The translations under genes and the position numbers were made by a program. The notes below the pieces were generated by a model, which saw nothing but the letters and a program-made list of their open reading frames with translations, had not been told where the DNA came from and did no database searches. From positions 62,001 to 126,000 of IMG/VR virus record IMGVR_UViG_3300046171_000252: DNA of 64,000 nt; one strand, written 5' to 3'. How positions within the stretch are numbered: the stretch's first letter is position 1; each line of letters opens with the position of its first letter. Positions 61,469 to 62,310 of this stretch are shown here, one piece after another.

Positions 61469-61477
61469 ATGCTTTGT

Positions 61478-61485: not shown

Positions 61486-61489
61486 ATCA

Positions 61490-61543
61490 TGGATGCCTTC
61501 GGGGTCCACAAAACACAAACTCGCTTTTAAAGGAGCTACAATC
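61490..61543 (+). promoter_or_regulatory. ROSE-like RNA thermometer in the hsp20 5' UTR
   Basis: cUUCGg hairpin 61490-61508; UCGCU (61521-61525) pairs with SD AAGGAG (61530-61535), leaving a bulged G. Confidence 0.6.
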
Positions 61544-61978
61544 ATGGGAAACCTTGCACGGTATACTGCTGCGGACCTACCTGCGTTGATGGAACGCATA
61601 AATAGGAATAGCATAGGAATGGATGAATACTTCGATAGGTTGTTTAATCTCCACGAAACAACGAAGAATTATCCACCATTTAATCTAGTCACGGTCAGCG
61701 CAGTAGAATCACGACTAGAACTTGCACTTGCAGGATTTAGAAAAGCAGAAGTAAATGTCTACACACAAGACGGAAAACTCTTTGTCGAAGGACAAAAAGA
61801 GGACACCGAATCAGAAACGACTTATGTCCACAGAGGAATGGCTCAACGATCTTTCACCAGATCTTGGACACTGGCAGAGGATACGGAAGTTAGATCAGTT
61901 GAATTTGAGGATGGGTTGTTAAGTATTGTTCTGGGAAGAATTGTGCCCGAACATCATCAAAAGAAGGTCTGGTTTTGA
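61544..61978 (+). CDS. hsp20: Small heat-shock protein Hsp20
   Basis: YPPFNL, LELALAGF, YVHRGMAQRSF, DGLLSI; SD-supported ATG at 61544. Confidence 0.93.
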   Translation: MGNLARYTAADLPALMERINRNSIGMDEYFDRLFNLHETTKNYPPFNLVTVSAVESRLELALAGFRKAEVNVYTQDGKLFVEGQKEDTESETTYVHRGMAQRSFTRSWTLAEDTEVRSVEFEDGLLSIVLGRIVPEHHQKKVWF

Positions 61979-62001
61979 TACCCTAACTGATTTTTGCTGC
62001 G

Positions 62002-62047
62002 GTTGATACAGAAGTGTATCAACATGATACACTATACTCTATATAAT
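62002..62047 (+). promoter_or_regulatory. Overlapping inverted repeats of TGATACA plus TATAAT box
   Basis: gttgataca-gaag-tgtatcaac and agtgtatca-aca-tgatacact share the middle arm; TATAAT at 62042-62047. Confidence 0.55.
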
Positions 62048-62071
62048 TATGTAATCGATTAGGAGGTATTA

Positions 62072-62155
62072 ATGAACTTCACCACCACTGCCTTAGCAGC
62101 TGGAACTCTAATGACTATTTTTATTGGAGTTCCCATTACTACATTTGTTTCTTAG
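62072..62155 (+). CDS. Hydrophobic micropeptide, 27 aa (MNFTTTALAAGTLMTIFIGVPITTFVS)
   Basis: Perfect SD AGGAGG at 62061-62066; single TM-like segment. Confidence 0.6.
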   Translation: MNFTTTALAAGTLMTIFIGVPITTFVS

Positions 62156-62158
62156 CAC

Positions 62159-62233
62159 ATGGAAATCTTAGCAACCTTTGTCATTTTTGGCGCAGTAATG
62201 AGTGGAGCATTTGCACTCACCCCTAAAAAATAA
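62159..62233 (+). CDS. Hydrophobic micropeptide, 24 aa (MEILATFVIFGAVMSGAFALTPKK)
   Basis: Starts 3 nt after the previous stop; TM segment plus basic tail. Confidence 0.5.
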   Translation: MEILATFVIFGAVMSGAFALTPKK

Positions 62234-62268
62234 ATACTAAATAAAACTGAATATCGTCGTCGCAGATG

Positions 62269-62310
62269 GAGGGGTAACTGGCAAAATCCAGTTAATGCCC
62301 CTCTTTTTTT
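62269..62310 (+). terminator. Long bulged hairpin plus T7; terminator and possible sRNA 3' end
   Basis: gagggg/cccctc outer stem, taactgg/ccagtta inner stem, T run 62304-62310. Confidence 0.7.

Follow-up and report, generated by a model that had tools for sequence, protein, structure and literature searches.

A putative two-gene micropeptide operon in an apparently mobile cassette of T4-like cyanomyophages

Small membrane proteins encoded by phages in moron- or PeSL-like cassettes are a known general kind (PMC11323111), and small membrane proteins have been reviewed (PMC12648545). In T4-type phages, PeSL cassettes enclose small non-essential open reading frames (ORFs) of the hyperplastic region between a sigma70-like promoter and a stem-loop terminator (PMC2839356, PMC4122927), and PeSL mini-circles excised during infection are detectable by inverse PCR (PMC2839356). 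Cyanophages also carry host-derived auxiliary genes such as psbA, hli, petE, petF and ndhD (PMC12801897). Here we describe a cassette of two micropeptide ORFs, ORF1 and ORF2, that follows the small heat-shock protein gene hsp20 near the end of a stretch of viral DNA of 64,000 nucleotides (nt), taken from positions 62,001 to 126,000 of IMG/VR record IMGVR_UViG_3300046171_000252. This whole stretch is called the window below, and positions are given in its own numbering. The source of the window is a T4-like cyanomyophage with a genome of 207.6 kb. Its nearest cultured relative is Synechococcus phage S-SKS1, with which it shares 94.6% DNA identity in hsp20. Our best explanation, given slightly less than even confidence, is a two-gene micropeptide operon in an autonomous, horizontally mobile cassette of T4-like cyanomyophages, whose peptides modulate a host membrane complex.

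The cassette resembles each of these described systems in part. As in PeSLs, a promoter-like site and a terminator frame the ORFs, presence differs between near-identical phages, and the neighbouring genes vary. However, a genome carries many PeSL copies that recombine with one another, whereas the palindromes and the terminator hairpin of the cassette are single-copy, and the cassette is therefore not a PeSL in the strict sense. Its palindrome also differs from a PeSL stem, being AT-rich, placed at -35 and associated with a single cargo family rather than forming a G/C-rich terminator stem. With cyanophage auxiliary genes the cassette shares a non-essential and patchy character, a host relationship (for ORF2) and the same hot spot, which also holds ndhD, petF, SHMT and purM/purC. 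Unlike those genes, the host relatives of ORF2 are known only as 'hypothetical protein' and ORF1 is without a host counterpart in 301 genomes, so that a host homologue was found for ORF2 only. Small single-pass modulators of the AcrZ, KdpF, MgrB and CydX type are likewise shorter than 50 amino acids (aa), consist of one helix with small or polar faces, and are overlooked and accessory. They have no sequence relation to the cassette peptides, which are without an identifiable target gene next to them; unlike these modulators, ORF1 is uncharged, has a fixed length of 27 residues and resides in a phage-borne mobile cassette. Both peptides fall within the size and hydrophobicity of type I toxins (TisB, Ibs and Hok; a hydrophobic helix of 19-50 aa), and the basic C-terminus of ORF2 and the tight-looking control are further likenesses. 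In contrast to type I toxins, the Shine-Dalgarno sequence is strong, and two different peptides lie in tandem; no antisense RNA gene was detected, nor an antisense promoter by a consensus scan, which may miss unconventional ones.

Two conserved micropeptide genes

The features of the locus are as follows.

61544-61978, plus strand: coding sequence of hsp20 (small heat-shock protein), from the ORF list and identity to the annotated S-SKS1 hsp20
61976-61978, plus strand: hsp20 stop codon, followed by a short conserved leader
61979-62233, plus strand: stretch gained or lost relative to S-SKS1, from an alignment of the window, S-B43, RN05-S, S-SKS1 and Sf-FS3
62003-62022, strand not assigned: palindrome 1, TTGATACA-GAAG-TGTATCAA, with arms at 62003-62010 and 62015-62022
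62015-62031, strand not assigned: palindrome 2, TGTATCA-ACA-TGATACA (7-3-7), with half-site 3, TGATACA, at 62025-62031
62042-62047, plus strand: predicted -10 box TATAAT, from a consensus scan and column conservation
62061-62066, plus strand: Shine-Dalgarno sequence AGGAGG, 5 nt ahead of the ORF1 ATG (62072)
62072-62155, plus strand: ORF1, 27 aa, MNFTTTALAAGTLMTIFIGVPITTFVS, without D, E, K or R, from the sequence and comparative data
62159-62233, plus strand: ORF2, 24 aa, MEILATFVIFGAVMSGAFALTPKK, C-terminus KK (..GAFALTPKK), beginning 3 nt past the ORF1 stop
62234-62267, plus strand: conserved spacer (..CTAAATAAAACTGAATATCGTCGTCGCAG..), from alignments, running into the terminator
62268-62310, plus strand: intrinsic terminator GGAGGGG..AACTGGCAAAATCCAGTT..CCCCTC followed by T7, with a fold of dG -23.1 kcal/mol and z -3.6

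A preliminary description of this DNA had reported the AGGAGG, the uncharged 27-aa ORF and the 24-aa ORF, with an operator-like element above the pair and a terminator below it. The first three were each recovered at their positions, correct to the base, and both flanking elements were found (palindromes at 62003-62031, hairpin and T-run at 62268-62310). It had also called the ORFs unannotated, and no feature lies over the cassette in the five cultured phages that carry it.

As ORFs this short are frequent by chance (71 ORFs of at least 20 aa occur in the 4 kb examined), the case for genes rests on relatives. Three seeds, independent of one another, served to collect contigs: the opening 17 nt of ORF2, the palindrome, and a degenerate back-translation of an ORF1 motif. 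Family counts thus come from pattern-seeded scans and are lower bounds throughout. As the contigs come from uncultured viruses and redundancy at the level of samples is possible, distinct sequences were counted. With the three seeds pooled, an ORF1 homologue follows palindrome 2 at 194 loci or more, in viral-metagenome contigs and a few cultured phages, and the cassette, common in marine viromes, is spread over at least about 190 marine cyanophage contigs. The only GenBank phages with the cassette are S-B43, S-B05, RB11-B, RN05-S and S-SCSM2R (5 of 50,697 phage records). Among the matches listed, ORF1 is exactly 27 codons long at 191 of 194 loci, and 94 of 98 protein variants are free of charged residues; overall, ORF1 is represented by at least 130 distinct nucleotide sequences and at least 98 protein variants. 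The constant length is also seen at loci seeded by the palindrome or the peptide motif alone, and in-frame indels between lineages leave ORF1 at 27 aa. A hydrophobic peptide of the ORF2 family follows ORF1 in 118 of the 188 untruncated loci (~63%) among the matches listed, most often at a distance of 3 or 13 nt from the ORF1 stop. At least 60 variants of ORF2 were found, the motif [TA]P[K/N/I/T] being present in 57 of the 60 listed, and ORF2 stays at 24 codons in the 38 contigs found via its first 17 nt. In S-B43, ORFs of 27 and 24 aa are kept at ~70% nucleotide identity.

The substitutions between relatives have the pattern of coding sequence. In the window clade, the variable columns at codon positions 1/2/3 number 5/1/10 in ORF1 and 5/5/12 in ORF2, and the ratio of nonsynonymous to synonymous substitution rates (dN/dS, given here as pairwise averages and for this clade by the Nei-Gojobori method) is 0.14 for ORF1 and 0.15 for ORF2. 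Among the three main lineages, dN/dS of ORF2 is 0.08-0.21. The family-wide ratios of 0.40 for ORF1 and 0.36 for ORF2 (codons 7-24, the seeded start being excluded) are upper bounds, because the proportion of synonymous differences (pS ~0.5-0.57) is near saturation. Column entropy in ORF1 is 1.05, 0.47 and 1.20 bits at codon positions 1, 2 and 3, and the strong conservation of the second position is expected where selection keeps hydrophobic character. All or most of the other reading frames over the ORFs are closed, and a GGAGG-like Shine-Dalgarno block and the ATG are conserved family-wide. RNAalifold predicted no structure over the ORFs in 15 diverse transcripts, and an Rfam scan gave no match over the cassette. 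As the frames remain open at constant length in diverged relatives and the substitutions are mostly synonymous, we regard it as very probable that ORF1 and ORF2 are protein-coding genes under purifying selection. The earlier proposal of two real micropeptide genes is thus borne out by frames preserved at 194 or more loci and by a dN/dS of ~0.15 in the window clade.

Peptide properties and host relatives

The grand average of hydropathy is 1.31 for ORF1 and 1.19 for ORF2, with best 19-residue windows of 1.86 and 2.08, respectively. Judged from composition, each peptide is hydrophobic enough for one membrane span, and both are likely to be membrane-inserted. In ORF1, residues M1, N2, T4 and G11 are invariant and F17 is nearly so, and the C-terminal third varies freely. 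The ORF2 family has the core M[EAG][IL][LF]A...GA[FY].[LM]TPK, and the C-terminus of ORF2 in the window is basic. ORF2, which lacks a Shine-Dalgarno sequence of its own, starts 3 nt past the ORF1 stop codon, and its translation may therefore be coupled to that of ORF1. The two peptides were also considered as paralogues, but hhalign finds no relation between them.

Longer ORF2 variants of 33-39 aa (L098:1184-1282, L115:8037-8153, L110:4116-4220 and L143:494-598) carry an acidic tail past TPK that ends in LPY or IPW (..EEELFLPY, ..DKPDELIPW); ORF2 of the window is without this tail. It resembles the C-terminal tip of bacterial SSB (DDDIPF), and this likeness would suggest a membrane-anchored docking or decoy motif. 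A third hydrophobic micropeptide of 40-41 aa, MI[N/S/E]DIKSSALAFVYAW.., lies directly after ORF2 in some contigs (L074:3773-3895, L085:7301-7423 and L149:5968-6087).

We next consider which known proteins the peptides could be. The preliminary description had noted a loose resemblance of ORF2 to PetM, which fails both Pfam and profile-profile tests. The Pfam PetM model (PF08041, cut-off 25.1 bits) recovered host PetM from five of five Synechococcus genomes, with scores of 41-50 bits, yet at E<=10 it had no match anywhere in the phage genome. Aligned with hhalign, the ORF2 family matches host PetM with a probability of 3.7% over nine N-terminal columns. PetM ends in an invariant C-terminal block, ..GGALLLKLQGD, to which ORF2 has no counterpart. 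PetM and ORF2 are alike in length class, in having one helix and in an N-terminal E-I, but their kinship fails every sequence test. The reading of ORF2 as a PetM copied or mimicked by the phage, which would enter cytochrome b6f, is hence the least credible of all the readings discussed here: what speaks for it is the by-eye N-terminal likeness (EI..T/A..F), which hhalign reproduces over the same nine columns, and against it stand the blank PetM and Pfam searches, the low hhalign probability, the missing C-terminal block and the fact that host genomes with a relative of ORF2 (type A, below) also have a normal PetM. More broadly, neither ORF1 nor ORF2 matched any Pfam-A family at E<=10, including PetN, PetL, PetG, PsbI/J/K/L/M/T/X/Y, Ycf12 and PsaI/J/M, although HMMER filters may drop very weak matches, and an NCBIfam scan of both also returned none. 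As ndhD follows the cassette in six contigs, ORF1 was considered as NdhP and rejected, since S-SCSM2R has ndhP annotated as a separate gene (PMC12801897). A further reason is that the ndhD of S-SCSM2R has its own promoter and terminator.

To look for relatives in hosts, we searched 301 genomes of the Cyanobiaceae, the family of the Synechococcus genomes to which the phage psbA had led. The ORF2 profile matches complete small ORFs in 26 of these, and the ORFs fall into two types. In type A, the complete ORF of 23 aa, MEILAVIAIVGAAFGGAAALTKK, has a terminator behind it; its best match has an E of 3.8e-7 per genome at 32 bits, and 14 of its 23 residues are identical to ORF2 of the window. At the type-A loci L300-L303 of marine Synechococcus (peptide at 1501-1569), the peptide has a conserved leader and its own terminator, and the next gene encodes a secreted protein in which an MliC (lysozyme-inhibitor) domain is present. 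The type-B peptide is 32 aa long, has EDDFDFL at its end and precedes an abutting or overlapping second peptide of 31-40 aa. This operon is conserved with synonymous variation and adjoins a gene for a conserved protein without a Pfam domain. It is present in marine Synechococcus (L304-L310, e.g., L304:1349-1572 on the minus strand) with a first peptide of 30-32 aa, a second peptide of the form ME[ST]KLLALMAFGA..WAW.., a stop/start junction of TGATG or TAAATG, and a neighbouring protein of 165-186 aa; one variant of the first peptide occurs on 104 contigs in public data. The link of type B to ORF2 of the window is weaker and partly rests on phage contig L131, which encodes a type-B-like peptide. 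The L131 sequence is itself part of the ORF2 profile and so inflates the 96% match obtained against host type B. The type-B partner peptide was rejected as an ORF2 relative (probability 4%).

By this profile evidence, ORF2 belongs to a peptide family that is also encoded by marine Synechococcus. An exact look-up of the host relatives returned the name 'hypothetical protein' in all cases. The ESM Atlas gave no lead for the peptides, Rfam found nothing meaningful at the host loci of the ORF2 relatives, and a full-text search of the available literature library for six peptide strings found no paper containing them. The family, its charge-free 27-residue member, the palindromic promoter element and the host relatives all appear to be undescribed. 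This is in keeping with the preliminary description, which had suspected an undescribed system: there is no annotation in the carriers, no family model, and no paper with the peptide strings.

Control elements and mobility of the cassette

Three half-sites upstream of ORF1 form two overlapping palindromes. Palindrome 2 (TGTATCA-N3-TGATACA) lies upstream in 180 of the 188 ORF1 loci listed that were found with the peptide-motif seed alone, the remaining 8 being mostly truncated contigs. The full palindrome 1 is present in 108 of the 188 ORF1 loci listed (again with a seed independent of the palindrome), its left arm being degenerate in many relatives. Each palindrome is single-copy in the 207.6-kb phage genome, and further matches need two mismatches, like the control. 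A promoter consensus scan gave TCAACA-17-TATAAT with 10 of 12 matches. Across 87 distinct upstream sequences the -10 box of the family is [T/G/A]ATA[A/G/T]T, with A2 and T6 invariant. As the hexamer 17 nt 5' of this box is not TTGACA-like beyond the palindrome's own TCA, we infer a -10-dependent promoter with an operator at -35. Palindrome 2 would be the candidate operator, bound at the -35 position by a dimeric DNA-binding protein, and the predicted transcription start is near 62054. To our knowledge, cyanophages of this kind are without a MotA/AsiA system. The boxes of NtcA, FNR, Fur and LexA do not appear to fit in half-sites or spacings, and we make no claim about them.

That the palindromes are a host operator was considered and, for the genomes searched, rejected. 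The triple half-site arrangement occurs in none of the 301 host-family genomes, and palindrome 1 with one mismatch occurs in 14 genomes versus 7 for the control. Copies of palindrome 2 with one mismatch were seen in Prochlorococcus (L402-L406). These lie within a conserved 205-aa coding sequence (..IVCINMIHISPW..; ..CINMIH..) and are thus a coding coincidence and no operator. A terminator T-run followed by TGnTATAAT, an extended -10 box, opens neighbouring genes at L003:2110-2125, L001:2330-2345 and L318:3195-3215, and this composite terminator-promoter layout resembles that of PeSLs.

In S-SKS1, which is without the cassette, the hsp20 stop runs directly into the terminator that both phages share, and both junctions read TAA-ATACT. 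This arrangement suggests that the cassette was inserted between hsp20 and the hsp20 terminator, and hsp20 transcripts can therefore read through the cassette; no terminator lies between the hsp20 stop and the cassette. The upstream gene is hsp20 in 88 of the 107 loci listed (53-100% identical to the window protein), and at the other 19 it is purM (14), purC (2), a small transmembrane ORF (2) or a DNA methyltransferase gene (1). Downstream neighbours also differ between loci. As it is absent from S-SKS1 and sited behind at least five different upstream genes, the cassette is a mobile accessory module, PeSL-like in architecture. The view of it as a dedicated cassette after hsp20 needs to be amended accordingly: it does have its own control element and terminator, but the link to hsp20 is positional.

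Several types of cargo were found, namely ORF1 alone, ORF1 with ORF2, ORF1 and ORF2 with the third peptide of 40-41 aa, rarely an ORF2-type peptide only, and a host-type peptide. At L131:10644-10739, the cassette promoter stands in front of a peptide that is 78% identical to the Synechococcus 32-aa peptide (..EDDFDFL) and replaces ORF1, and at L118:1307-1420 it stands in front of a long ORF2 peptide only. Between hsp20 and the genes ahead of DNA polymerase lies a hot spot, which holds the cassette and other accessory genes. These are ndhD-like genes (L071, L091, L120 and L122), petF/ferredoxin (L154), SHMT (L118), and ORF156 with ndhD in S-SCSM2R (L318); the ndhD, ferredoxin and SHMT genes of the hot spot each have their own promoter and terminator.

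Over the aligned transcripts, RNAalifold gives a consensus structure for the terminator hairpin alone, with compensatory changes in 5 of its 11 pairs. The same terminator ends hsp20 in S-SKS1, and part of the spacer at 62234-62267 is common to phages without the cassette. The sequence of the inner hairpin, AACTGGCAAAATCCAGTT, is conserved both in cassette phages and in the cassette-less S-SKS1, and the outer stem covaries; inner hairpins are found at 62276-62293 in the window, L003:2085-2102 (approximately) and L318:2838-2855. The phage genome has one copy of the inner hairpin, the conservation of which exceeds what termination alone needs. Nucleotide conservation is very high across the cassette, non-coding parts included, and is above that of the flanking 3' end of hsp20.

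To one side of the cassette are hsp20, regA and clamp-loader genes, and to the other side DNA polymerase-proximal genes. In the 5' leader of hsp20 (61487-61549), the only Rfam hit of the region was a weak match to the ROSE_3 RNA thermometer, which at 22 bits (E 0.2) stays below the gathering score of 43, and a late-promoter-like motif, TATAAATA, lies just 5' of this leader at about 61469-61476. Outside the window, psbA and psbD of the source phage (G000:C1:183904-186166) each match the Photo_RC model as two pieces in separate frames, those of psbA being 183904-184512 and 184535-184729. A frameshift, a short intervening sequence or an error of assembly could account for the split.

Possible functions of the peptides

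The candidate roles named in the preliminary description are modulation of cytochrome b6f, of photosystems or of a transporter, and a type I toxin-like action. As a modulator operon, the cassette would work as follows. Transcription would start near 62054 from a -10-only promoter, with a dimeric regulator binding the 7-3-7 palindrome that fills the -35 position, and read-through from hsp20 would be a further source of transcripts. ORF1 would be translated from its strong Shine-Dalgarno sequence and ORF2 by coupling to the termination of ORF1. Both peptides would insert in the host thylakoid or cytoplasmic membrane, where their small or polar faces (T4/G11/T12/T15 in ORF1; G11/S15/G16/A19 in ORF2) could pack on other transmembrane helices. 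Like bacterial small membrane proteins, the peptides would then modulate a membrane complex of the host in an accessory role, and the cassette would be a non-essential fitness factor similar to auxiliary genes, with neither a structural nor a lysis function. We prefer a modulator because the cassette is dispensable and patchy, lies in an auxiliary-gene hot spot, has one peptide in common with hosts and encodes helix-packing faces; the choice of this role over that of a toxin is, on these grounds, tentative, and we give it somewhat less than an even chance.

A number of observations weigh against the modulator operon. The promoter and the start site are deduced from consensus matches, and a wholly uncharged 27-mer and a stripe of glycine and small residues would fit a pore-forming or membrane-perturbing peptide equally well. 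ORF1 has no credible homologue in the 301 host-family genomes, its best matches being frames without an ATG inside other sequence. No family model of Pfam, NCBIfam or PHROGs matches ORF1 or ORF2, so that function cannot be transferred by homology. ORF2 is absent from 37% of the complete cassettes listed, which means that the two peptides are not obligate partners. Co-folding of ORF1 with ORF2 (window peptides, single sequences) gave a score of 0.03, which is evidence for neither side. Metatranscriptomes from four marine runs contain contigs over the cassette (e.g., 62001-62266 and 62012-62237), but these lend weak support for expression because they are strandless and DNA carry-over is possible. 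Their ends near 62000-62012 are probably assembly breaks where the flanks diverge, rather than a transcription start.

The main rival is that the peptides perturb membranes. They would oligomerise and depolarise or permeabilise the host membrane in the style of type I toxins, serving host shut-off, superinfection exclusion or interference with competitors, and the palindrome would hold their expression under tight control. This is suggested by very short and highly hydrophobic single helices, by small-residue stripes (ORF2 G11/S15/A19; host type A GAAFGGAAA) together with a basic C-terminus, and by a dedicated operator-like element that overlaps the promoter. The cassette is also dispensable, as is often the case for exclusion and competition genes, and the host relatives lie among genes with no or uninformative Pfam domains. 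However, the minus strand of 62050-62310 has no promoter-like site and thus no visible source of an antisense antitoxin, although a consensus scan may miss an unconventional promoter, and no RNA structure except the terminator is conserved. The strong Shine-Dalgarno sequence and the consensus -10 box argue for robust expression, and a charged or polar tail, as is typical of type I toxins, is missing from ORF1. We consider this rival unlikely, though it deserves to be taken seriously.

Far less probable are three accounts that give the peptides another role or none. If the ORFs were incidental, the conserved unit would be a non-coding RNA or DNA element, such as an element in the 3' untranslated region of hsp20 or a recombination module. 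The conservation of the whole cassette at the nucleotide level, beyond that of the hsp20 3' end, and its position inside the hsp20 transcription unit would fit this, but the periodic, mostly synonymous substitutions in both ORFs, the 27 codons of ORF1 kept across at least 130 distinct nucleotide sequences despite indels, the retained Shine-Dalgarno sequence and ATG, and the blank RNAalifold and Rfam results over the ORFs make it very unlikely. The tiny ORFs could also be regulatory leader peptides (upstream ORFs), where the act of translation controls a neighbouring gene; they lie directly 5' of a terminator, and the spacing of ORF1 and ORF2 fits translational coupling. This we hold to be slightly more improbable still, as the terminator is the ordinary hsp20 terminator in cassette-less phages and shows no visible alternative structure, the downstream genes vary between loci and have their own promoters, and the amino-acid sequence itself is under purifying selection. 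A lysis-timing role, for instance as a miniature holin/antiholin pair, is no better placed than leader peptides. It is brought to mind by the presence in a phage of two small membrane peptides that are transcribed together, but the cassette is absent from S-SKS1 and almost all cultured cyanomyophages, it lies in a region of replication genes with no endolysin nearby, and ORF1 has neither a charged residue nor a hydrophilic C-terminal domain. Known holins are moreover much larger than 24-27 aa.

Even among cyanomyophages, which are among the best-annotated environmental viruses, no deposited annotation contains this gene pair, since ORFs of fewer than 30 codons are discarded by gene callers. 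The cassette offers a testable case of phage small proteins in an ecologically dominant host-virus system. Cultured carriers are available in S-SCSM2R on Synechococcus WH7803 and S-B43 on MW02, and nature offers a plus/minus comparison in the window-type phage and S-SKS1. The unannotated host relatives suggest an unexplored micropeptide repertoire in marine Synechococcus, and the invariant palindrome at -35 is a handle on a transcription regulator in these phages, where little is understood of how non-early promoters are controlled. In a bolder and rather doubtful extension of the modulator operon, the micropeptide family shared by phages and hosts would be a new class of cyanophage auxiliary gene, with ORF1 confined to phages and ORF2 common to both, docking within the membrane on a photosynthetic or bioenergetic complex during infection and switched on by the palindromic operator. 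If true, T4-like cyanophages would have a further layer of host take-over and a novel way of controlling promoters.

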